A stretch of 64,000 bases of DNA from Lepidodermella squamata. Its lineage: Eukaryota; Animalia; Gastrotricha. Positions within the stretch are counted from its first letter, which is position 1. Each line of letters opens with the position of its first letter. The DNA lies in NCBI GenBank assembly GCA_047495785.1, contig JBLDXI010000001.1:1860001-1924000 (forward strand), read 5' to 3'. A program made the translations under genes and the position numbers. Under the pieces are notes generated by a model. The model did no database searches. It saw only the letters and a list, made by a program, of their open reading frames with translations, and was not told where the DNA came from. Positions 3,247 to 27,910 of this stretch are shown here, piece after piece.

Positions 3247-5582
3247 TTAGTAAAAGCAAGCGTAAACCTCCAAACCAGAATAGCCAGTAGCCGCATCCAC
3301 AGTGATGTAGTAATCCATTCCTGAATCTGATATTGGTTTAACTACCCATTCATTACTGCCCGTCCAGTAAGGCGCCCAGTCGTAGTCATTCGGAGTCGCA
3401 ACACGTCCCTTCTTAACAAACATATCGGCGTCACCATTATCGCCGTAAATTTGAACATTTTGAGTCGTTGCTCCGAGGGGCACAAAGACAACGTAGTAAC
3501 GAAGGTCACCGGTACTAGCCGCAGTGTTGTATTCAGAATCACAATTAGCTATTCTGATTGGGTTCGATGGTGATCGGCCCGGGGTGGATCTTGGCGTTGT
3601 CGTTGTTGTTGTTGTCGCGCGGGTTGTAGTTGTGGTAACACCAGGTCGGCGGGTTGTTGTAGTTGTAGTAGTCGTAGTTGTTGTGGGAGTATTGGTGTTA
3701 CCATTGCTGGGATTGGCTACACAGTCACTGATATCTAACCCACCCGCTTTCCAAGCATTGATAACAGCAATCGTGTCACCGCCATTAATTTGGTACTGTT
3801 TGACAGCAGATGCAACATCACAACCAGCTTGCTTCAAAGTGGTGTCCTGGCGCCAGAAAAATCGGTTGGCGTAGATGTAAGCGCGACCAGCGAGCCGAGG
3901 ATCCCACCGTGGACTCGTTGCTAGCTTGTAAAAGATGTAATTAGGCACAGCACTGCAGGTATGAGGATCTTGGCACACTGATTTGCCACCGCGGCAGTAA
4001 CGGCTATCTGGAGAGGGGAAGTACCACGAGTATTGGTTATTTTGGGTCATGTCTCGCAGGCAACGATCGTTATTCGCCATGCAATTTTGACCGACACACC
4101 AGTTGACGGAGCCTGAAGCGTAGAACTCAGCCATCATGCCAATAGCGTCTGAGAAAGCTTCATTCAAACAGCCCGGCTCTCCGGAGTAAACCAGCTGTGA
4201 ATTGTCGCTGATATCGGTAACCGCGTGACCGATTTCATGGGCGACTACATCTAGACACGTCCCGAGCGGGTAGAACATGGTACCACCGTCACCGAAATAC
4301 AACGCCTCGCCGTCCCAGTAAGCGTTGTCATAGTTCTGATTGAAATGTACGGCAAAATTCAAAATTCCGGTCGGGGTCAGCTGTGTCAAGCCGCCCCATG
4401 AAGCATTCTTGAGCATGTCCGTCGCTCTTATAGCGTTAGCGAAAGAATCTGCTACCACGCCATAGCCGCGGTTGTTGCCGTCAGTGGGACCAGTCGAGCA
4501 AGGGTATGTATAAACGCGGCTGGATGAGCTTAAATCACTGCGGCCGCTGTTCATATGATAAACGTTGACCGTTCCATCAGCATTTGACATCTGACATTGA
4601 CTTGGACTGAGTCTTTTCGCTTTCGAGGATAGATCCTCCTTGCCTGATGTTGAACCGTAAGTATAACGTCCGGTTTTTGAATTTCCGCCATCCCAGCCTC
4701 CTTTCAAACAACTCCATGAATCTTTCACGGTTTGGAGCTTAGTATCAACTAAGCATGTGAAGCAAATAGCCGCAACTGACTCGGTCATGCTAATGCGAGC
4801 AGCTTTAGAACGGATTTGGACTAAATCAGCATAGACAACACTATCAGGATCAGAGGTGTTGGTGCCGTAGTCGTAGACAAATCGTTCAGACGTAGTGTTC
4901 AGGATTCGTCCGTCAGTTTCGGTTTGATATTTTGTTTTGCAAACTGCTTCCGACATACCAGGGATCGGCAGAGACCTGCTAGCGCCTCTTTTGAATTTTA
5001 GAACTATGTCATTTTTCGGATTATCAGTGGATACAATGGCTAAGCCGCGGACGCCAGCTTTCTTTTCGACTACTGTGGCACCGCTGCCCCAAACTTTCAA
5101 GTTGTTGATCCTGTGTTCGTAACGTTTGATTACGTCGCCGTTTGGGAGTTCCATTTCATTGCCGGTTGGGACGATTTGCTCATTAGCACCTTCAGTGTCT
5201 GTTGCTAGGCCGAAGAGAGATCTGGAAGCGGGCTGCTCAATAGCTCTAAACGCTTCGTCTGTTTTAGAAAAAGTCAATGCTTGCTATTAACATTCGATAG
5301 GAGTAGAGATTTCTAACCTTTGTCTGGAGGGGCAGATTTTTGTCTTGCATTTCCAGATGCTGAGCTGCTTGGTGTAGCCCGAGTCGGCGCCCTCCTAGGC
5401 TGAGTAGTTCTTGTAGTTGTTTCTTCATCAACGCTACCATCATCATCATCGCCATCTTGGCCATAAGTATTTCTGCCCCCTCCGCGGCCCCAACCTCCTA
5501 GACCTCCTCCAGGTTGAGTAAATGCCAAATTCAGGCAATACAGGAAACAGAAAATCACAGCAAGAAAGCTTAACCTTGCCAT
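3247..5582 (-). CDS. M4 (thermolysin/LasB-like) zinc metalloprotease copy A: signal peptide, propeptide, catalytic domain, Thr-rich linker, PPC domain; single intron
   Basis: Motifs GGNSKTGRYTYG, NAYWDGEALYFGDGGTMFYPL, VVAHEIGH, GCLNEAFSD, DPHTCS and PPC motif GDADMFVKKG..YDWAPYWTGSNE. Signal exon 5582-5318; uninterrupted ORF 5277-3247. Confidence 0.93.
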
Positions 5583-5969
5583 TTTACTTCTTCGAATCTA
5601 CTGTACTCTTTAGACCAACGTGATTCCTTCTTATATCTAATGCATGCAGGTGTTTACAGGTGTAATTACACGCCTTACGTATGCGTGTTCGTGTGGCTGG
5701 CATCTTTATAACCACTCGATTACTGGCGGCAATAGTAATCGTGCTCGGCGTGTAATAAATGTCGTCATGTCGAGCCAGCTCAGAATTCAACTTGACAATG
5801 CTTAATTGTATATACCCATCGCCAAGTTACATAGCGGCATCTAATGAGTCATCCGTTTTATCAAGAATCGTCACCTACGTCTTCAACAATAAATCATTCT
5901 TGGAACTTGGAACGTAGTAAATCACTCTTGGATAACATGTGGTCACTTTGCTTTAAAATCAAAAGGTTA

Positions 5970-8900
5970 TCAATAGTAGCAAGCGTATAGCTCAAGTCCT
6001 GAAAAGGCGGAGGCTGCGTGTATCAAGATGTGGTAGTCCATATTTCGTCGATTGATAGGCTCTACCACCCACTCATCGGACCCTAAATAATAATTTTCAT
6101 TATTCAAAGACTTTCCTTCCAGATATACAAAATTACCTTCCCAGAAGGGAGCCCAGTCATATGAACTCTGATTGGAAATATCATGTGAGTAAGAAATATA
6201 TTTAGAACTTTAATAAGGTCTTACCAGTGTTGGCTGAGAGCCAGCTTTTATCTGTTACATAGAAAGTACGAGTTAAGTTTGCATTAGATTCAAGAGTTCT
6301 TAAACCCACGTAAAGATCTGCATCGCCATTCTTTGCATAAATTTGCACATTTTGGGTTTTGGCATTTGCTGGAACTGATATCACAAAACGGATTTGTTCA
6401 TTTGTTTTCGCCCAAATTCCTGAACATTGATAACATTTCATTAGACTCTCTTCATGTCAGCGAATAAATACCCATAATTGATTTGCAGTTTGTCAATCGT
6501 TTCGCCGGGAATAAAGCCATTGTGGTTGTTTGCTTCGCTGTTGTCGTACTCGGACGTTTAGTGGTAGTGGTGGTAGTGGTAGTTGTTGTCGGTTTGGTAG
6601 TAGTCGTTGTAACGCCTTTAATCGTGGGTACTGACAGTATTACTTTAGCGGGCGTCGTCGTCGGGGTGGTAGCAGCAGTTGTTGTACTAGCTGTAGTTGT
6701 GGTTTTTGTCGTCGTTGAAGTTGTGGGGGACGTTGGAGTGGTCGGCGGAGGCGTAGTCGTCGTGACCCATGGCTCCCAGTCCGAACCCTTCGTAATGCAG
6801 TCGCTAAGGTCAATACCAGCAGCACCCCAAGCCTTCCCGACAGCGGCCACGTCGCCCCCAGCAAGATTCGCCGTCTGAACCGCGGTTGCCACATCACACC
6901 CAGCTTGCTTGATAGTTGTTTCCTGCTTCCAGAACATGCGATTTGCAACCAGAAATGCGCGGGCTGCCGATTTGGTAGTCCAACCACTTGAAGTCGCTAA
7001 CTTGTAGAAGATGTAGTTCGGAATCGCACTACACGTGTGCTGAAACATCATCTTTCATATCAATAACTAAGCAAGTAAAGGTAATTACCGGGTCAAAGCA
7101 ATCAGATGGGTTTGCCTCATTGCAATATTTCGGGTCAGGGGTTGGAAAAAACCCAGAGTATGGTGTGTAAACTTTGAGATCGCGAAGGAATGGCAACGAT
7201 ACCATGCACTCGGGCGCGATCAGGAAATCGTTCTTCCCTGTTGCGTAGTACTCGGCTAATTCTCCCATTATGTCGGAAAAAGCTTCGTTCAAACAGCCAG
7301 GCTCGCCACTGTAAATCAACGCTGAACCACTGCCAGTGACTGCATGCCCGATTTCATGCGCAACGATGTCCAAGCATGACTGAAAGATGGAATGAGATTG
7401 TCAAACTGCGATGATTCTATGAAAAGACAACAACCCCTAAGGAATAGAAATACTTCGATCCATCTCCGAAATACAAAGCTGTGCCGTCCCAATAAGCTGG
7501 ATCACAAAAGTATGAGCAAGTAGTCGCGAATTTAAGGAAACTGAACTTGCCATTGTCGTATCCGCTTTTGAAATGAACAGCCATTTTCAGCTTCCCGGCC
7601 GGAATGATTTGTTTCATGGTTTCAAATCCCCCTACAGAATGGTACAGACTTGTCGCAACAATGAAAAAATCTCACTGACCGTATTCGGGATTGAGCAGCA
7701 TTTCGTATGTCTTCAGACCATTGTACAAAGTATCAGCTGGATAAGGTTAGAATTGTAAGGTTTGAAACTGATTTTGTGGTATGTACCTAAAGCGCCGTAA
7801 GATCGGCTATCATCGTCTTCGTCCAAGCCTTTGAGTAACATCAAGTGTAATTCGAATCACGCAGGTGACATGAAAATTACCAGTTTCACACGTAAAAGTA
7901 TGCGGCTTTAGGCTATCATCTATGTCCCAATAGCTATTATGCATGTGTAGCACCTGAACTGTCAAATCAGGATTTGATAGCTGGCAATTCGTGTCTGACA
8001 ACTTCAAAACAGGCAAAGGATCCTTGCCGTTCTCGCCGTAGGAATACTGCCCCATTCGCTTATTGCCGCCCTTGTACCCTGAGTGAATACCACTCCAATG
8101 TTTCAGCACCTTATTCGCTCGCGTGTCCACAAGGCAGTAGATCAAAAGAGGATCAAACTCATCGGAACTTGCTCGTTTCATCTCAACCAAATCTGCATAA
8201 ACTGTGTCGTTCAAACCTCCCGCTCCTCGGTCGTAAACAAAGCGTTCCAAGTCAAACTCCACATCAGTCAAATCCGCATTGGGCTTACTCGCTGAATATG
8301 CCTTTTTACAGGATTCTTTAGACGCCTCTTCCGCCGGCAATGAGCGCAAAGTGCCAAGACTGTGCTCATACTTCAGCGCGATATTTTGTGAGAGCCGCGA
8401 TGCAGATGGAGGCGCGAAAACCTTCCAAACGCCTGATTTCTTCTCGACAATCGTCGCACCGCTGTTCCAAACTCTGAAACCTGCAACGCGATGGTCGACT
8501 CGCCGCATCCGAGTGCCGTCTTTCAGCTCTAGAGGTGAACCAGAGTCTGTAACAGTTTCGAGGTTCGATGTTAATAGCAGCAAATCTCGAGATGTTGGCT
8601 TGGCAATATTCGCGAAATCGCTGGCTATTCAGGTGCAAGCAAGTTCGAATAGATTTACATTGAAGTCCAAGTATTGTACCTTTGTCTGGCTTCAACATTT
8701 TTATCCTGCCGTTATTTGGTGGATTTGGTGCCATCTGGAACACTGAGCCAAACTGTGCGATGGGCGGAAACGTTGCCTTTTTGGTAGTGGTAGTGGCTTT
8801 AGTGTATGTTTTCGTCACACTTCTCGTCGTAGTCTTCGAAGCAGAAAATGGTGTTGAATTGTATGCCCTTACCCCGATTCTGATTCCAACCCGGCCTTGC

Positions 8901-8995
8901 GAATTGGATGTAGCATTGTCGACGCCGTCGCTTTTGGCGAAAGATAGTAAGGTGATCAAACCCACCACAAACAATGGGTTCAAAGAATTTCTCAT
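5970..8995 (-). CDS. M4 metalloprotease copy B (about 12 exons)
   Basis: Signal MRNSLNPLFVVGLITLLSFAKS; GGNKRMGQYSYG; AYWDGTALYFGDG; IVAHEIGH; NEAFSD; AEYYATGKNDFLI; Thr-rich linker; PPC ending YACYY-TGA at 5970. 11 introns keep frame (one GC-AG at 7550). Confidence 0.9.
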
Positions 8996-9493
8996 TCTGT
9001 GCGGCTATGAAACACGTTATTCTATACGCTTTTAGCTGTTTTTACTCTATAATGTTATACTCCATTTTTTCGTAGAAATTAACGGCACAACACGTAAATG
9101 ATCCGCAAGTAAGATAAGTAAGACGTCTACGAAATCTGTATGCCGTCCGGTTTCGACTTCGTGCTTTTCCATTGCAGAAATGTCCGCGAAGTCAAAAGCG
9201 GATGCTATTTTTTCATTTTTTCAGGGCAAAATGAACCTTCAAGTAATGTCTACCGCAAACTGATCATCACGAACCAGACATTGACCTATCCTGGATGAAA
9301 TCGTCATCAAAGCTTCCGCTTAGAGAGATACCATGCCTTATGTGAATAAACGGACTACATGTAAACAAGTATATTGAATTTTATTGTTCAGATCCCGAAA
9401 ATAACAATAAAATCGCGGCTAATTTTACTAAAAATAGCATCCGCTATTATGGCAAATTAATCGTAACAAAGCGGAATCGTCTCGAATGGAAGC

Positions 9494-12400
9494 TTAAATG
9501 AAGCAGGCGTTGAGGGAAACGTCATCAAACCTGAGAAAAGAGAGTCTTAACACAAAAAAAAACGAAAAGTACAAGAAAAAACTTACGCTTTCGAGGCGTA
9601 AATCATGATGTAGTACCAGCCTTTGACAGTAATTTTCGTCCTAACCCATTCAACACTGCCCTTCCAGAATGGTCGATATTGATCCGTACTTCCCTAATCG
9701 CGATAAAAATGAGTTGGTGATGACTAAAAATAACAAATCTTCCTCTCACCTGGGCAACTGTTGGAATAGATCCAGCTCGGATGTACAAGTCCGCATCACC
9801 TGAGGAAAGTAAGACAATTCGCTATTAAATCCAGAAATGTTTCCAAGTTACCAGTGAATCCGTCGATGAAAACATTCATCCTATCAACGCTATCGGCAAC
9901 GAAAATCTTGAAATACAAAGCCTTGCCATCACCAGCTGCCAGGTCTGAAACAGCTTCATTTTAGCGAATGGTATCAAGTATATAGACAAAAACCTGCCTT
10001 CGTAATCTTCGCAATTCTGAATGATCCTAATGTTATCAGAAGGCGCCGGGGTAGCAGGAACAGGGGCTGATGGGGGCCTCATCGTAGCAACTGTAGGTAA
10101 AGGCCTGTAAGTAACCGGAGCGAAAGTTGGCCTGGTAGCTGCTTGAGTGGTCTGGCGGTTCGGGATAAGCCAGGTAAGCCAAGCTGGGACAGTGATACTC
10201 CACCCAGTAGTAGTAGCCCTAGTAGCCGGGGCAGCAGTTGGTCGGGGCTGGGGTGGCGGAGGCGGCGGGGTAGGTCTGTAAGTTGGACCTGGTGGGGCTT
10301 GGGTCGGTGGTGGCCTGGGTCCAGGGGTGGGCATGCATCCTGAAATATCGATATCCACAGCTTTGAAAGCTTCCATCAAATAACGCGGCTCGCCCCCGAT
10401 CCTGTACTGATTTGCTGAAACTGCCACGTCGCAAGCTGCTTGTTTCATTTTATGATTCTACAAGACCGATTTATGTTATAAAAAAAATATTTGTTGTAAG
10501 AAAAACCTTTTTCCAGAAGGCAGCATTCGCGTTCAAGAAGACCTTCCAAGCGCTTTTAATGTCCCAAGTTGGTGAGGTAGCTAGCTTATAGAAGACGTAG
10601 TTGTAGATGGCACTGCAGTGGTGAGGATCGGAATCTGCTGCGAATTTCGTGATTGACATAGGAATAGTCATATCGCGGAGGTAAGGTCGCTGTTCAACAT
10701 GACCGTATTGCTCATAATTCATAAATATTTCCAAATTCACGGCTTACGGATTTCATGCAACTTGCGCCAATTTTGAAGTCATTTTTGCCTTCTACATAAA
10801 ATTCAAGTGCTTCAGCCATCATGTCCGAAAACGCCTACATTAATCCATGATGCGTGACGTTATTTTAACCAAACAAAAATGCTTGCTACCTCATTCATAC
10901 ACCCAGACTCGCCTTCGTAGATGAGATCCGACGTCATTTGGGTGACGCTGTGGCCGATTTCGTGCGCAACAACGTCAGCACATGTGCACAGCCTGTCAGT
11001 CAATAAATTTTAAAATTAGAAAAATGAAGGCGAAATAAAAGAGATACACATACGGTACAAATGTGGAGCCTCCATCGCCTACATAAAACGCCGAACCATC
11101 CCAAAATGCGTTATCGTACCTTAAAGACCGATGCTTAAAGTTGAGAAACGGGAAAAGCTGGACCTTACTTCACGTTGAAATGCGCGCCAACATTAAACGT
11201 TCCCACCGGGGTGTATTTGTTGATGTCCCGAGAAAATCCTATAATGGAGCGATGAAGGATTAGGTAATTTTAATCCTAGTCAACGCGCTTTACCCCAGTC
11301 AGGATCCAGTAAAAATTGGACAGTTTTATTCGCGTTGTAGAAACAATCAGCTGTCGAAAATAATGTTGAATTCTGAACTTTTGATTGATCATTTTCTCAC
11401 CCATGGGCCCGTAGGCACCATTGATAGGATCATCCGGTCCGCTCTGGCAGTTGTAGGATACCACAGGCGTAGACCCGGGTGAAATTCGGCTGGACCTGCT
11501 ATTCATGTTGTAAACGGTAACTGTCTTAGCGGCGTTTTGCATAAGGCATTGGCCCTGGCTGTTTGTTATAGCAGGCAGCTGAGGGCGATTCGGAGATTCT
11601 CCATAGCGATACCTGATTTTTTAAAACAAACTTGAATCAACCAAGAAAACTTTGCATCGACTCACTTTCCAGTTCTTGTGTTGCCGCCGTAGCCGAAATA
11701 TGTGTGAAGGCCATCCCAAGATTTCAGGACCTAAAAAACTGTCAATAAGGAACGAAGCCAGGTGATTGCCCGAAATTTTAACCTCGCGTTTTCGCATGTC
11801 GATCAAGCACAGGACTCGGAATGGTATATTTTTGACATATTCTAAGCCCCTTATATCAGCTTCAACTGCCAGGGTTTGCGAGCCATCTGCAGCTTGGTAG
11901 AAATAAGTTCGTGTTTTGTTGTCGTAGACCTAAGAAAGACAATTTTCTCCTAAAATTACCAGCTCGAAGTCGAAATTTACTGTATCTCTAGATTCGACCT
12001 CCCAATGGACCTTGCAAATATTGATGGCCGCTGCATCTGGAACGCCGCTGTTGTCGCTTGCAGCTTCCCTCGGAATGCGTCGCAATTTTTGAGGGCCAGA
12101 TGCCGATCGGATCTTAGAAGGTCCAGCGCATAGACCTCGAATAGCTGGCGGTTTGCGAACTGCTACGCCAGAATTCCAAACAGGAATGTTGTCGACAGTA
12201 TGTTCCAGCCTAGATATGACTGACCCATCAGGCATTGTCACCTCTAAAATTGAATTCCATGAAGAAAAATGAAAACAAAAGCAATCGGCATGTACCGATT
12301 CCTGTGGGCACCAAGTCCTCGTTTTCATTGGTCAACTCGAAGATATCCCGAGCTCGAGGGGGAGCTTCATCATCGGCTAAACCTAGGCAAGGATCGTCGT

Positions 12401-12805: not shown

Positions 12806-15800
12806 TCAAATCGCGCAAAAATCAAGCTGCAAATCTTGAAATCTGAAATAAATGAAAATTGATAAATGAAACAAAAGAGGTCGGCAAACCCCCTCACCCC
12901 TTGGTCGCAAAAATCATAACGTAGTACCATCCTTTGGTGACTATTTTCGTTCGAACCCATTCAATTGAACCTTTCCAGTAGGGGCGATACTGATCAGGCG
13001 GATTCTTTCGAATAAAACAAGAAAAATTTCCATTATTGATATGAAGACAGAAAGAAATACCGAAGATGTAGTCGGAAGGGTTCCGTTTCTTACATATAAA
13101 TCAGCGTCACCTTAAAAAATCATCTTAAATGTTGAAATGGGAATAAATTGAAGCTCACCATTAGCTGCATCGATGAAAACGTTGATGCGCTCAGCACTGT
13201 CTGGAACCATGACCTTGAAATAAAGGGCGACCCCGTCGTTGGCCGATAATTCTAGACAGAAAAAATCAAGAAAATTGCGATTACCGTAAATAGTAGCCCG
13301 GGCTTATGAATTTTAAATCCCTAAAATTTTAAATTTATTTAAATTTAAATTATTCAAATTTAAAATGAAAAAATGAAAAATCTCAAAAATCTTGGGATAG
13401 CATTATTTTTTATTTTTGGGGCCCTATCATACCCTCCAAACTGGGCTACTAAGAACGATGGGCTTCTATAAGCGAATGGGCGTCTATTTCAACATTTCCT
13501 GCATATAAAATACTTTTTCCTACCTTTGACTGCCTCGCAATTGTTCATCACTGGGATGTTGTCAGTTGGCGAGGCTTTGGTTGTTGCTCCACTTGTCGGT
13601 CTAACTGTAGTCGAAGTCGTCGCATTCAGCCGGGGAAGGGGCGCCCGAGTCGGGGGCGTTGTCGGTTTCGTCGGCTGGAGGGTGATAATCGTCAACCACG
13701 GCGGAAGAGATATGGTGAACGGGCTCGCTTTAGTCGTAGCTCGAGTCGTCGTGGTCGCGGCTTTTGTCGTAGTTGTCGTTGCAGCCGCAGTCGGAGCCGC
13801 CGTGGCAGGGGTGCTAGGCTTCGGGGGCATGCAACTAGAAATATCGATGTCTACGGCTTTGAAAGCTTCCAGAATGTACTGCGGATCTCCGCCGACTTTG
13901 AAACGCGACGCTGTGGTCGCAACATCACAAGCCGCGGTTTTCATGCTATGGTTCTGGAATTTTAAATAAAATCATAAATTTGACAGAAATTTGAGTAGAA
14001 CCTTTTTCCATAGAACGGCATTTGCATTTAAGAACGCTTTCCAAGCTCCCTTAATGTCCCAAGTTGGTGAGGTAGCCAGCTTGTAGAAGACATAGTTGTA
14101 GATCGCACTGCAATGGTGAGGGTCGGTTTCTGGGGTAAATTTGTTGTAAGACATCACGATGGACATATCGCGTAAGAACGGCCGCTTTCAATATAAATAA
14201 GATTGAAGATTTAGGATCGAATTTATTGAAATTTTACAGTTTGCATGCAATTTGCGCCGATTTTGAAATCATTTTTGCCGTTTTGGTAGAATTCCAACGC
14301 CTCGGCCATCATGTCAGAAAAAGCCTGCATAATATAAAGATATAAAGATATAAACCTGGTGAAAAATTCGCCTTAAAGTAACTCGCCTCATTCATGCAAC
14401 CAGATTCTCCAGAATAAACTAGATCTGACGTCATTTGAGTGACGCTGTGGCCGATCTATCAAATAGAGATCATATTAATCTGTAGCCACTTGAATCCGAT
14501 TCTTACCTCATGAGCTACAACATCTTCGCAGGCGCATAACCTAAGAAAGAAAAGTAATTTCGAGGCATTTTGGACGATTTTTTCAACGTACGGTGTGAAC
14601 GTTTTACCACCGTCGCCAACATAGAAAGCAGAGCCGTCCCAAAAAGCGTTGTCATATCTCACGTTGAAATGCGCCCCAACATTGAAAACGCCTGAGGGGG
14701 TATACTTTTTCATATCCTGCGAGAAACCTAGTTAAAATTTTCAATTTCAACGGGATCTTTTGTAAAATAAAACGAAGCCTAACCCCATTCAGGATCAAGA
14801 AGAAATTGAACAACTTTGTTTGAGTTATAAAAACAGTCGGCTAAATAAAATATAAAAAAATCCAACAAATTTAGGTGAATGGCCTCATTTTTTACCCAAT
14901 GGGCCGTATGCTGTGTTGACAGGGTCGTCCGGTCCCGTGTCACACGGGTAGGTCACAACTGGCGTACGACCAGGTACAATTCGACTTGTACTACTTTTCA
15001 TGTCATAAACTATGACCGTTTTATTCGCATTTTGCATTAAGCAGTCTTTTTGATCCGAAGATAGGGAAGGCAGTTTCGGCCGTGTTTCTCCGTATCGATA
15101 CCTAAGTAAAATTGAGAAATAAGGCGTAGGGGAAGTCCGAAACTTTCGCCTACTTTCCAACTTTCGCGTTGCCGCCATTACCGAAAAACGTCGAAAGAGC
15201 GTCCCACGATTTTATGATCTTTTACAAAATAAATTAGAAAAATTTAGGTGATTTCCCAATTTTTCACCTCATTTTTCTTAGCATCGATGAGGCAAATAAC
15301 GCGAAATGGGATATTTTTCGCGTATTCTAGGCCTCTGATATCGACCTCGACCGCGTCGATGAGCGACCCGCCTGTTTCCTGGTACTTGTAAAATTTCGAT
15401 TGACTCTCGTAAATCTCGTCAATATCAGTAAGTTCCCAATGCGTTTTGCATGATTTGATCGCAGTTTCATTCAACGCGTCAAGGTCTAGTGAACTAGCCG
15501 CTTGCCTTGCGACTCTGTTCAGCTTTTTCGGCCCTGAAGCTGATCGAATTTTTGTAGGGCCTGCACATAGACCTCTAATGGGCGGCGGCTGGATCACCGC
15601 GGCTCCAGAATCCCAGACTGGGATGTCATCAACGGTATGCTCAAGCCTCGAAATCACTGACCCATCAGGCATTTGAACCTCTAAATATCGTAGCGATAAA
15701 TATTTGGAAAATTGGAAAGAATCGGATGTTTATTACCGATCCCCGATTCAACCAGATCCTCATTATCGTTGGGCAGGTGAAAAATTTGGCGGGCAGTCGG

Positions 15801-16001
15801 CGGTGCTTCGTCTTCGGGCAAATCTTTGCATGGATCGAAATCTTCAGAATGTTGTGGCAGTTGGAAATCGCCCCGCTTAGCTCGCATCAGCAACCCATCA
15901 TCTGTTTTGAGTTCAGGTACGAAGTCGACCAATTTCCTGTTATTGGAGCAAATCGCTCCGTTTGTCAGCAGGAAAACAGGCAGCAAAATAGCCAACTTCA
16001 T
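12806..16001 (-). CDS. M4 metalloprotease copy D (about 15 exons), closest paralogue of copy C
   Basis: Signal MKLAILLPVFLLTNGAIC; GGNAKVGKYRYG; NAFWDGSAFYVGDGG; VVAHE|IGH split by an intron; NE|AFSD; DPHHCS; PPC GDADLYVRNG, ending DFCAI-TGA. 14 introns traced. Confidence 0.9.
13282..13488. mobile_element. Degenerate MITE-like insertion enlarging an intron of M4 copy D
   Basis: Inverted repeat tagtagccc (13291) / gggctacta (13443), AT-rich core, three tandem gggcNNcta motifs at the right end. The host intron is ~270 nt versus ~50 nt at the same position in copies B and C. Confidence 0.55.
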
Positions 16002-16402
16002 AACGAAGACTTGGAGGAAAATGGTGGTCAGAAGTCTTTTTATCGGCAGAATTAACCGCCGCTATTGATCTCTCAGCCATTATTCAATTTTTTTTTAAAC
16101 GGCTGTCAGTTTGCTTAAAAAACGAGACTATTCAGGTGAAACGCACTTGAAAATAACAAAAAATTGCATTCGTTTATTTTTTCTACCTTTGAGATAGTAA
16201 ATAAGTTTTGCTCACAATATAATAATATCGATGTATCACGTGTTGAATGACTGCAAGCCTCTATAAGGCAAATGAGAAACAAAAACATTTTTGCGACTTC
16301 AGATTATACTTATCAACCATTCAGTGAGAGGTGCATATTTTTCATACTCAAATTCAGGATCAAATAGTTCTTCTTCTGTCTTGCGGCAAGCGTTGAGAAA
16401 AA

Positions 16403-18420
16403 TTACTCCGGCAAATTGTAGAATGAGAAATTCGTCACTGAGACCTTCTCCGATGAAATCGGCTTCCTTGAAATGACTAGACCATAGGGCGTTTCGAGCC
16501 GAATCAAGGTGAACTGAAAATTAAACAAATTAAACAAATTACAAATATTCAAAAATCAGGTTTCAATTTATCCAGCAAAAATTAGCGGACTTATTCCTGA
16601 GAGTAACCTCCGTCGTGTTATCCCTCTTCATGAGAAGGATTTCGCCATTCGTCTGTGCTAGGTCGGCACGAGGCTACCGGCGGCGCTCCCCTAAGCTCAA
16701 GCACAAGGCTATCGCGGCCGGTGACAGGAGCCAATGACCGGTATTTGGGCATCTCTGCCCAGCTACTTTCTAGCCGTGGACCGGAGAATTTCAACCCAGG
16801 TCGCAGTTGAACAACGAATGTGTTCCGTGTGTTAACCTGATCAGCGAACTTCAGGCTATAGGCCCGCCCATTAGTTATGAATCATCAACACACATATAAA
16901 CAAAAACGCACTCGAGAAAAAATATCCACCCAGCTCATTTGCATATGCACACAAACAAAAATAATGAGGGGGTAAAAAAAATACTAGAAAATAATAGTAG
17001 TAAACACATACTTTGAATTCTTTACCCGGATCGTCCGTATTGTTATCCTGATTTGACGGAATAGCAATATTCACATCGACGTTTACCACAGTAGGCTCTG
17101 GAATTGCGACTGAATCGCCAACTTTCATCAAATCACTGAAAATTATAGTGAAATATTTCTGAAATTAGGAATTAACAATTGTAATTACGGTGCCATGTTG
17201 TGTATAACAACTGGAATACAATACGGAGCTGAAGATTCGTTAGCCACATCGCATAGACAGAACGCTAGCTCTGCATCAGACTTCGCAAATGCCACGGTTT
17301 TACCAAGCACAACAACGCCAGTATTTTGCCCGACTTGTAATTCAGAGAGAGGCACTCTTCTCAGGCGCAATCCGCTCACAGGGTCTCTACAATAATGAGA
17401 AAAAAATTGAAGAACGGATTTCTCATTTCGGTTCCTCACTTGTATACTCCCAAATCCAAATCACTAATGCTTTGGAGCATTTGCTGAAGCCGCTTAAACT
17501 TAAGGCGGCCCTTTTCTTTGCAAATGGTATTCACTGTTGCGAAAAACTGAGCAATTTGCTCAAGCTTGCTCTTCGGATCCGGCCATGTCGGATCAAGTCT
17601 AGCAGCTTGGACCAAGTCACTAATTGTCGGTTTATACTCGCACAAGTATCGATAGAGCATTGCGCGATTGTAATACATATCAGGTATGGCTCGAATGGCA
17701 GGGTCTTTTTCAGCCTAATAAATGCGTTAAACTTATAGCTCTGAGATCTCAGATAAAAACAGTTCACTCCCTTACTTGAGTATATGCTTGAAGAGTATGA
17801 GTCAGCATCAATCGTTTGTTCGTAGAAACAAAGAACATTGACATGTAGGCATTGCCCAAACATAGCCAAGATTGGCCATCAGTAGGGTCGAGAGCTACAG
17901 CTTGCTTTGCTCTCTCTAAGCTGTCCTCAAGTTGATTAACTCTCTCCTGCAAATTTAATCCAGAATTAACGGAGCCAGACAGTGCTCGAATGGTCATAGA
18001 GACACCGCGAAGACTCGCTTTGTTAGACTTCCATTTCAAAGCATCGGTGAAGCAGTTTTTGGCTGATTGAACGTCTCCTTTCTTCCAAAAACACTCGCCC
18101 AGGAGATTCCACGCTTCAACAGATGACGGATCTAGTTTCACCGCTTTTGATAATGCATCGAAAGCTTGCTGGCTAAAATCTGGCAGCACGTTATTGGCTT
18201 TGCCAACGCATAAAAAATACGAGCTTTTCGAAAGCTTGTTTGCATTCAGTTCTATTAGGTCTTGAACAGCTTGCAACTCAACTTTCAGAAGATCTATTTT
18301 CTTCGAGGCGTCGCTCAGCGGGTGAGTTTCAAAGAATTTGTCCCTGAACTCAAACAGCTTGTCAATGGATAGCTGTACAGCGACGAGAGCATCAAGTTCC
18401 AGATCTTTCTCTGATTCCAT
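16403..18420 (-). CDS. TTC5: Tetratricopeptide repeat protein 5 (5 exons)
   Basis: LFEFRDKFFETH, LSKAVKLDPSSVEAWNLLGECFWKKGD, AKQAVALDPTDGQSWLCLGNAY, C-terminal OB region VGDSVAIPEP and FTLIRLETP. Exons 18420-17776, 17714-17440, 17386-17189, 17135-17012, 16513-16403. Confidence 0.93.
16585..16869 (-). ncRNA. RMRP: RNase MRP RNA, nested in the last intron of TTC5 on the same strand
   Basis: Terminal P1 helix (gcgggcctat / ataagtccgc); P3 with AACACAC internal loop; CR-I GAAATTCTCCG (16792-16782) complementary to CR-V ACGGAGGTTACTC (P4); P8 hairpin ggcta-GAAAG-tagct (GARAR loop); P9 gggca-GAGA-tgccc; P19 hairpin; ~285 nt followed by T5. Confidence 0.88.
16894..16944 (-). promoter_or_regulatory. 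Putative type-3 Pol III promoter elements for the MRP RNA (TATA and octamer)
   Basis: TTTATAT about 25-31 nt upstream of the RNA 5' end and a perfect octamer ATGCAAAT at 16944-16937 on the minus strand. Confidence 0.5.
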
Positions 18421-18588
18421 TCTCAATTCTTTAAAATGGAAATGACAATAGTAGCTAAATCCATATCCAAACAAATAACATAAAAATATGGATGATAATA
18501 ATAAGAAAATTGAAGCTCAGAACGTACAATAGAAGAGCCACCAAGATGAGGTAAATTCGCCTTCTCCAATTCCGTTGGTAGAAGTGCG

Positions 18589-18740
18589 TTCAACCTTCAA
18601 AGAGGGCGTTGCTCCCAGAGGGCTCACTCTCATAGGGCACCATACCCCCAACCTAACCCTAACTCTAACGCTAAACCTTACCCTAACCTCAATCCTAATC
18701 CTTTGAGAGCGACGCCATCTGAGGATACTTCAACCTTCAA
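18589..18740. mobile_element. Short insertion with telomere-like (CCCTAA) degenerate repeats, subterminal inverted repeats and 12-bp flanking direct repeats
   Basis: ttcaaccttcaa at 18589-18600 and 18729-18740; inverted repeat ggcgttgctccca / tgagagcgacgcc; core acctaaccctaactctaacgctaaaccttaccctaacc. Confidence 0.55.
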
Positions 18741-20961
18741 CCAAGAAAATTTACCGATATTTTAAATGAACCCAACGGCCGTGATTTGAGTGATTTTCTG
18801 CCGAGGAGGGGACACATGCTACCCCAGAATCCGGAATACTTAACCCCGGAATTTCTTATCGCCGCCAATGAATGAACTTCAAGTAGCCATTTCTCAGACG
18901 ACACTAGCCTCATCTCATAGCTCTGACTCGGATAAGTAAAGAAAGAGGTTTAAGCATATTTCCCATTTTTACTGTGATGCTTGGATTGCTGCCAAAACTT
19001 CTAGTAGGGTCCTGACCTGCTCAGAAATGGTCACGAAGTGGTTAAAAAGACAAAAAACAAGCTCATCCGAGATATTTCTGACTTTCCCGCCAGATCAACG
19101 ACGCCAATGAAAAGGTCAAGGTCAAATAGCAAATTATTTTTATCTGAAATTCAGTATTAAATAGGTAATTTTATACATTAAGCAATATTATAACTATGAA
19201 TAATTCGAATTTTCGCCTTGAGTCTTTTGAAGGGTCTCGGGTTACAAGTTCGGGGTTTGGAAGATCGATGCTGCCCGCTGGTTGAATCCATTTAATTCAA
19301 GATACTTAGATGCTAGAAATTTCTTCTTCCCACTGATTTAATTAAATTCTGTACTAGAGAGCCTGAGATAACTTGGATTTATCATTCGATCCGTCTTCGA
19401 AGATGGCGGGTTGCAGCTATCATTGGTTGATCGCCATGTGGAAGCAAATTGGAAAGTGGAAGCGGAGATGGCTCGTTCAGGCTTGGAATTAGAAAATGTA
19501 GCTACTCGAAAATTGTTATATAGTTATTGTCTCTTTCTATATATCCGCAAAATTTCCGCGCCAAAATCCCAAAGTGAATCCTTCGATTTCGAATTTTACT
19601 TTCGCTTTTACCGGGATCGTCATCATGATCCGAAGCAACATCGGCCGATCGATAGGCGATTTATTACTAACTGTTAGCGATCCGAATTACAGAAAATAGT
19701 TTGGGTATGCTCCATTGAATACCGTTTGGCTCGCTAGGTATTACACGAAAAGTCACAATGACGAACACACAGCCATTGTGAAGCTTTCACAGGCGTTTTT
19801 ATTTTTCACGAATCATTTTTTCAAGTGGATTTATTATCAGATTGCTTAAAGAAAGACAATCAAGTACGAAAACTATCAACTTAAGCAGGTAAACACGAGT
19901 GAGGAAGTTGAGAACGACATCTTATTCTATTCTAGTTGAAAATGAAGAAAAGTTGGCTAGGAGTGTCAGATGTTGTTTTTCTAGTAGCTTCTGAAACTCA
20001 TAACGATCATCTTCACATGCGCTTGCAATAAAATATCAGTATTCATGACAAGTGGTAAGAGAAATGCAACTAGTAGATTGTGCGACCGCTTCTACCCAAG
20101 TCGTCCGAAATCAACTTCACAGATTGTTCTACGGAATAATTTCATATCAAGTTTTGGCAAGTTGACTTTGGAATGTTAAAATCATATTATTGTCCTTTGC
20201 TCCTATCACTAAATAAGGAGAAAGTTATTCCTTGGAAGTATGGATAAACTCTATTGTTTGCAATCTCAGTTGGAATTATGAAAACGCCTTTTTGTTAATA
20301 TCCATTGTCCATGGGCTATTTCAGGTAAAAAAATGCGAGAGAAAATCATCGCGCTATCAAGAATCATAACATTATTTTATAACCGGAAATACATGTTGTT
20401 TTGTTACCGGAAACAAAGCTCCGCGTCAAACACACAGGAAAAAATGACTGGCAAATCAAATATCAATCAAGCCTCGTTGAACGCAATTCAAAAGGCCCTG
20501 AAAATTAGCCGGAGGAAAATGTTTGATTTGGGTATAGTTGCCTGCGTAATGTTCGTTGAATATAATATCAAATAATCTCACAGAGAAATCTCACATAAAA
20601 ATTGAACAGTGATTCCTCAAACAACTAAATATTATATTAATTAAGCTCTAGGGATTGTTCGAATACTTATATTTACAAATTTGTTAGTGTATTTGAATAA
20701 AATAAATTCATCTATTGAAAAATAACGCTCAGGATTTGGGCGTGTTTTGTACAATGAAAAAGAAGAGAATTGTGAAAAACGCTAAAGAGAGTTTAACGTC
20801 TAGAATTATTGCTCGACTTCGGCGTGTTCTTGAACTATTCAAGCAATTTTTTGTTTCACCTCCTGGCCGCCCAATCAGTCAATTCGATAAAAGATGGCTA
20901 TAGGATTTTTTGAAAAAATGTTCATCTATTAACATTATTGACAACACAATGACTGCCATTT

Positions 20962-27243: not shown

Positions 27244-27317
27244 GCCTCCTTGGCTCAGTTGGCTAGAGCGCCAGTCTCATAATCTGGAGGTCGTGAGTTC
27301 GATCCTCACAGGGGGCA
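27244..27317 (+). tRNA. tRNA-Met (CAT), elongator type
   Basis: GCCTCCT/GGGGGC acceptor stem, CT-CAT-AA anticodon loop, GTTCGATC T-loop, T5 terminator ~9 nt downstream. Confidence 0.95.
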
Positions 27318-27836: not shown

Positions 27837-27910
27837 GGTTCCGTTGTGTAGTGGTTCATCACGTCTGCTTTACACGCAGAAGGTCGCGGGTTCGAACCCC
27901 GCCGGAACCT
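27837..27910 (+). tRNA. tRNA-Val (TAC)
   Basis: GGTTCCG/CGGAACC acceptor stem, TCTGC-TT-TAC-AC-GCAGA anticodon arm, GGTTCGAACC T-arm, T4 downstream. Confidence 0.92.

Follow-up and report, generated by a model that had tools for sequence, protein, structure and literature searches.

A predicted RNase MRP RNA gene with Pol III-type signals of its own, nested in sense in the last intron of TTC5 in the gastrotrich Lepidodermella squamata

RNase MRP RNA is the RNA subunit of a nucleolar endonuclease that cleaves pre-rRNA in ITS1. The described systems closest to the locus reported here come from the survey of Manivannan et al. (2015; PMC4287351), in which Pol III signals are retained by the MRP RNA genes of every animal examined, and the promoter-less, host-dependent intronic gene is described for RNase P RNA only, in insects and crustaceans only. 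In the same source, the GARAR pentaloop of L8 is used to distinguish MRP RNA from RNase P RNA (PMC4287351). Intron-embedded P/MRP RNA genes of arthropods had been cited as a precedent in the first-pass annotation of the locus; this precedent stands for RNase P RNA and falls away for MRP RNA (PMC4287351).

The stretch of DNA analysed (the window, 64 kb in length) carries on its minus strand a five-exon gene and, in the last intron of this gene, a predicted MRP RNA gene (Table 1). The identification of the host as TTC5, first proposed from the sequence and its translations, is supported by: (i) TPR families, which match exons 1 and 2 in an exon-by-exon Pfam comparison, (ii) TTC5_OB (PF16669), which matches exon 3 at 25.9 bits (profile positions 2-47) and exon 4 at 17 bits (61-80), both scores being below the cut-off of 30 because introns split the domain, (iii) a word-based protein search with exon 1, whose matches bear the name tetratricopeptide repeat protein 5 and contain PF16669, (iv) a match of exon 4 to the GDSV.IPEP motif of frog TTC5, and (v) exon 5, which aligns with the C-termini of TTC5 homologues (F..IR[LV]E.P..L[VI]). 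The protein searches were made on single exons. The four introns measure 61, 53, 53 and 498 nt, and all are of the GT..AG type with consistent phases. The last of these, which interrupts the region coding for the OB domain, has exactly the boundaries first assigned to an intron of about 500 nt; the others had been put at about 55-60 nt. The nested MRP gene accounts for this one oversized intron of TTC5.

Table 1. Features of the TTC5 gene and of the nested MRP unit, in window coordinates.
Feature	Position	Strand	Remarks
TTC5 exons 1-4	18420-17776, 17714-17440, 17386-17189, 17135-17012	-	Encode TPR repeats and first parts of OB domain
TTC5 intron 4 (last), 498 nt	16514..17011	-	GT 17011-17010, AG 16515-16514, phase 0; contains whole MRP unit
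PSE-like element GTGTGCATATGCAAATGAGCTGG	16930..16952	-	Octamer-like core ATGCAAAT at 16937-16944, ~-75 from predicted start
TATA-like box TTTATATG	16893..16900	-	~-29 from predicted MRP start
RNase MRP RNA gene (predicted)	16578..16869	-	Rfam core 16590-16863; ends predicted from P1 extension, promoter spacing and T-run
T5 run, presumed Pol III terminator	16577..16581	-	First run of at least 4 T after promoter
TTC5 last coding exon (exon 5)	16403..16513	-	36 codons plus stop; C-terminal strands of OB domain

A full-length match to RNase_MRP (RF00030) is returned by Rfam cmscan of the 64-kb window on the minus strand (86.1 bits, E 1.9e-22, gathering score 50), with model positions 1-266 of 266 matched. 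The first-pass annotation had proposed a contest between the MRP and RNase P models; MRP won, and it is taken as the best model of the RNase P/MRP clan because RNase_MRP is the sole clan member kept at 16590-16863. At gathering thresholds the whole window yields three matches, one of them RNase_MRP, and a permissive scan of 16300-17200 gives the same match, one chance-level miRNA match and nothing more. The match lies on the TTC5 strand, which places the RNA in sense orientation. The P1 pairing extends 5-6 nt past both Rfam ends (5' GGGCGG..., 3' ...UCCGC); thus, the MRP RNA is probably ~290 nt in length, from ~16869 to ~16578. Its GC content is 0.57-0.64, compared to 0.28-0.40 in the flanks of the intron, and the initial description of a GC-rich sense RNA of ~285 nt is borne out.

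The predicted structure is that of a regular RF00030 member. The mCR-I element (GAAAUUCUCCGG) and the mCR-V element (ACGGAGGUUAC) align to CR-I and CR-V of the model, and CUCCG of mCR-I is complementary to CGGAG of mCR-V, so that a P4 pseudoknot may form; both motifs are identical in a related species known from metagenome contigs. The P8 hairpin (GCUA-GAAAG-UAGC) closes on a GARAR pentaloop, with L8 reading GAAAG here and GAGAG in the relative. P3 is present and P19 forms a hairpin of AUCCUUCU and AGAGGGAU. The elements named at the outset (P1, P3, P4 pseudoknot, GARAR-loop P8 and P19) are thus all found, in the RNase_MRP alignment and in the consensus fold with the relative.

Pol III signals were judged by the criteria of Manivannan et al. 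(2015; PMC4287351), and the 130 nt upstream of the MRP gene were compared with the corresponding stretches of 12 U6 genes and of the RNase P RNA gene in this genome. The 23-nt PSE-like block of the MRP gene recurs at the RNase P RNA gene with two differences (L002, ~1410-1432); common to both is GTGTGCATATGCAAAT[G/T]AG[C/T]TGG, whose ATGCAAAT core precedes the Rfam start by 81 nt in either gene. In 10 of the 12 U6 genes, a core like ATGCAAATGAG (in a few with a one-base change), followed by ..GGTCGAAAT, is located at -73/-74 from the U6 5' end. The 14-mer CATATGCAAATKAG has one occurrence in the 64-kb window, at the PSE-like site, against an expectation of 0.05. The U6 genes have TATTTAA or TATTTAT at -30; in the RNase P RNA gene, TTATAAG lies at a distance similar to that of the U6 TATA-like box. 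With the MRP start placed at 16869, on the GGGC with which the extended P1 begins, the core is at -75 and TTTATATG at -29, within 1-2 nt of the U6 spacing. No run of at least 4 T interrupts the stretch from the TATA-like box to the T5 run, which itself begins 8 nt past the Rfam end, just beyond the 3' strand of P1. Terminator-like T-runs are likewise seen after the RNase P RNA gene (T6) and at the end of each U6 gene (T5). The sharing of the PSE-like element between these genes points to a role as a promoter part, and the MRP gene is, as judged by its signals, of the type 3 (upstream-promoter) Pol III plan, with PSE-like and TATA-like elements at U6-like distances and a T-run at its end.

Other small RNA genes of the assembly inform this comparison to differing degrees. 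The U2 upstream regions have only loosely similar, ATGCA-type motifs; thus, no claim is made of an element shared with Pol II snRNA genes. A genome search for 7SK (RF00100) gave no match, and 7SK is therefore unusable as an additional promoter comparison. The ATGCAAAT core is the sequence of the vertebrate octamer motif, here at PSE distance (~-74) in U6, RNase P RNA and MRP genes. Genome-wide there are ~31 gene copies of U6 and ~47 of U2, many of them clustered (U2 on C15, 3.26-3.29 Mb; U6 on C12 and C29). Two U6 copies, L003 and L014, are without an exact match to the core, and a third, L010, has the core (in the L004-L013 set) and is without the TATA-like box; these three copies may be weaker or dead.

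The nesting is shared with a diverged relative. For exon 1, the best matches (69-76% identity; TTC5 ~70%) are parts of genes on four metagenome contigs from ENA, L015-L018. On every one of these, RNase_MRP is matched over its full length (89.4 bits), on the strand of TTC5 and flanked by the exon 4 and exon 5 homologues. On L015, the MRP match (10415-10691) lies between the homologues of exons 1-4 (8820-10213) and that of exon 5 (10782-10889, 67% identical); thus, the location of MRP in the last TTC5 intron is conserved, and the survey of TTC5 last introns in related taxa suggested by the first-pass annotation finds MRP there also in the L015-L018 species. The intron of the relative keeps CATATGCAAATGAG, with the core at ~-73 from its GGGC, and T4 and T5 runs after P1; the sequence at its TATA position, TTTCTACG, is a poor TATA box. 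Column identity between the window and the relative is 68% across the MRP RNA, compared to 42-49% in the intron flanks. An RNAalifold consensus of the two species has 69 pairs, of which seven are compensatory (both sides changed) and none is broken, two sequences giving such a test limited power. The compensatory changes and the lack of a broken pair are evidence against a pseudogene.

The two species differ in the structure of TTC5 itself. In the relative, a short additional intron (L015 9222-9270) interrupts what is exon 1 in the window, and intron 1 of the window (17715-17775) is absent from the relative, in which exons 1b and 2 are contiguous at L015 9510/9511. The MRP-bearing last intron is kept in both species despite these differences. 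Of the other TTC5-bearing contigs, L020 has a whole TTC5 gene and no MRP match in Rfam; it is ~71% identical to a plant TTC5 and, thus, serves as a distant negative control only. L019 and L021 end before the last intron and stand outside the nesting comparison. A DNA pattern scan of JGI metagenome contigs with the 31-nt mCR-I and P8 stretch found no match, which says little because the contigs of the relative come from ENA.

In a search of the 121-Mb assembly (151 contigs) in which the best candidates were scored, one RNase_MRP match was found, that of the TTC5 intron. The RNase P RNA (RF00009) is encoded by a separate gene (G000:C32:2399464-2399772, 119.6 bits) on a different contig. Human TTC5 presumably lies close to the RNase P RNA gene RPPH1, as the first-pass annotation noted; this proximity has no counterpart in the present assembly, the one genome that the comparison covers, because TTC5 and the RNase P RNA gene are located on separate contigs. 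The best explanation of the locus, with function read from sequence, is that it represents the single, functional RNase MRP RNA gene of the genome.

Three sequencing runs (X1-X3), used as contigs and of kinds that are guesses, bear on expression and arrangement. Contigs of the public run X1 join 17776/17714, 17440/17386, 17189/17135 and 17012/16513, which are all four TTC5 joints, and X1 has no depth over intergenic stretches; thus, X1 behaves as RNA and every TTC5 intron is confirmed. The summed word depth of X1 is ~38 in the MRP segment (at 16630) and ~17 and ~6 in the flanks (at 16561 and 16987), values of a kind, contig depth, that cannot rank the parts of a gene; the pattern is consistent with a separate stable MRP RNA, short of proof. 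The X1 contigs over the intron flanks indicate that intron-derived RNA exists, which could in principle also supply MRP RNA. Run X2, which has a different organism label, has contigs on 16586-16801 only, some near-identical and some 90-95% alike, with none on the TTC5 exons. Run X3 covers everything, including intergenic DNA, and one 994-nt contig runs from exon 5 through the whole MRP intron and exon 4 to exon 3, so that the arrangement is borne out in DNA; X3 may be from the source sample of the assembly itself. Over window positions 15000-19500, the X3 contigs are of two classes, at least 99% and 90-95% alike, which suggests two diverged haplotypes or a mix of two close strains or species in the sample.

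The genes that surround TTC5 were also noted. Downstream, a minus-strand neighbour (15000-15990) is expressed and spliced in X1, with joints at 15098/15151, 15218/15268 and 15680/15737 and introns of 49-56 nt. The region 3247-8995, likewise downstream of TTC5, is what we take to be an array of peptidase M4 genes, and a peptidase M4 gene is found downstream of TTC5 in the relative (L015 11764-13035); there are hints that local gene order, or wider synteny, is conserved between the two. Two tRNA genes are located ~500 nt apart on the plus strand (27244-27317 and 27837-27910; Rfam tRNA, 65.2 and 65.3 bits).

The MRP gene is read, with a probability of roughly 0.8, as an independent type 3 Pol III unit nested in sense in the last TTC5 intron; which polymerase transcribes it, where precisely it ends and that it is independent of the host are inferred. 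Transcription would start at the GGGC near 16869, directed by the PSE-like element (~-75) and the TATA-like box (~-29), elements that also precede the RNase P RNA and U6 genes. Termination would fall at the T5 run (16581-16577), directly past the 3' strand of P1, such that the primary transcript would already have near-mature ends. Pol II would read through the MRP unit, and the TTC5 intron is spliced out normally. Points against an independent Pol III gene are the X1 contigs on the flanks, the poor TATA box of the relative (TTTCTACG) and the loose similarity of the U2 motifs.

The first two of these points lend some weight to a dual supply, in which a working Pol III promoter would be joined by a second source, with some mature MRP RNA trimmed from the spliced TTC5 intron. 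The sense position in an intron of an expressed host, conserved in the relative, favors such a supply, as do the low-depth X1 contigs of the flanks, which reveal unspliced or excised intron. For scaRNA28, both an intronic and an independent route are described (PMC12150615). However, nothing at the locus demands a second source, as promoter and terminator are complete and match those of other Pol III genes, and contig depth cannot apportion the RNA between sources; dual supply is considered unlikely. About equally doubtful is the proposal that a sense nesting kept across diverged species is not neutral. The locus would then be a living intermediate between an ancestral Pol III gene and an arthropod-style host-dependent gene, with the gene's own promoter and the spliced intron both supplying MRP RNA, or with Pol III activity that modulates the expression of TTC5.

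Less probable still is an MRP RNA that depends fully on its host, being made by Pol II within the TTC5 pre-mRNA and processed from the intron, with the upstream motifs as chance or relics. The same strand and the last intron are what this shares with the embedded RNase P RNA genes (RPR) of arthropods (PMC4287351). The defining trait of those genes is, however, a lack of Pol III signals, whereas the MRP gene has the 23-nt block that recurs at the RNase P RNA gene, a TATA-like box at the U6 distance and an immediate T5 run, and both the PSE-like element and the T-runs are kept in the relative. MRP RNA genes have, moreover, Pol III signals in all animals surveyed (PMC4287351). The initial reading of an intron-embedded MRP gene thus holds for its place in the last TTC5 intron and fails for the promoter-less type, as the gene has a PSE-like element, TATA-like box and T-run of its own. 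A non-functional copy (pseudogene or retro-copy), with the working gene missing from the assembly, might be allowed by a genome search in which only the best candidates were scored and by an assembly of 151 contigs, but is highly improbable given the full-length model match with all signature motifs, the compensatory changes with no broken pair at the same locus of a diverged relative, the intact promoter and terminator, and the contigs of RNA-like runs on the MRP segment.

The proposed independent Pol III gene overturns nothing that is known. What it offers is the clean annotation of a ribozyme gene that is essential but escapes protein-based gene finders. For a little-studied invertebrate lineage, it also gives a working picture of the promoter that lies upstream of the genes for U6, RNase P RNA and MRP RNA (CATATGCAAATGAG at ~-75 and a TATA-like box at ~-30). 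A literature search found no paper linking RNase MRP with gastrotrichs and none linking MRP RNA with Drosophila CG10365, which we take to be a possible host of the Drosophila MRP RNA gene, itself presumably located in an intron. The locus is also a case for the question raised by Manivannan et al. (2015), as a P/MRP RNA gene that is sense in a host intron yet keeps Pol III signals, and a sense nesting with Pol III signals is the state expected just before a switch to host dependence.

Compared to the MRP RNA genes of animals (RF00030; e.g., human RMRP and those of insects), the predicted gene has the same architecture (P1-P4, P8 with the GARAR loop, P19, and mCR-I/mCR-V) and the same plan of a PSE, a TATA box near -30 and a T-run terminator (PMC4287351). 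It differs from the usual plan in its position, sense inside the intron of a protein-coding gene, and in the octamer-like ATGCAAAT core of its PSE-like element, and its mCR-I reads GAAAUUCUCCGG as opposed to GAAAGUCCCCGG in the RF00030 model consensus. Like the embedded RNase P RNA of arthropods, it encodes a P/MRP-family RNA and lies in sense in the last intron of a host transcribed by Pol II, an arrangement conserved between species; by contrast, the RNA is that of MRP and comes with a PSE-like element, TATA-like box and T-run. The arthropod-type sense location within an intron of an expressed Pol II host is found at the MRP locus; the arthropod-type absence of Pol III promoter and terminator signals is not, as signals common to the U6 and RPR genes are present, and the resemblance is one of position only. 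The closest parallel in the survey of Manivannan et al. is the RNase P RNA gene of the centipede Strigamia maritima, which has Pol III signals and, as proposed here for the MRP gene, is an independent Pol III gene in a host intron (PMC4287351), but there the gene is RPR and antisense to its host, whereas in the gastrotrich it encodes MRP RNA and is sense (PMC4287351).
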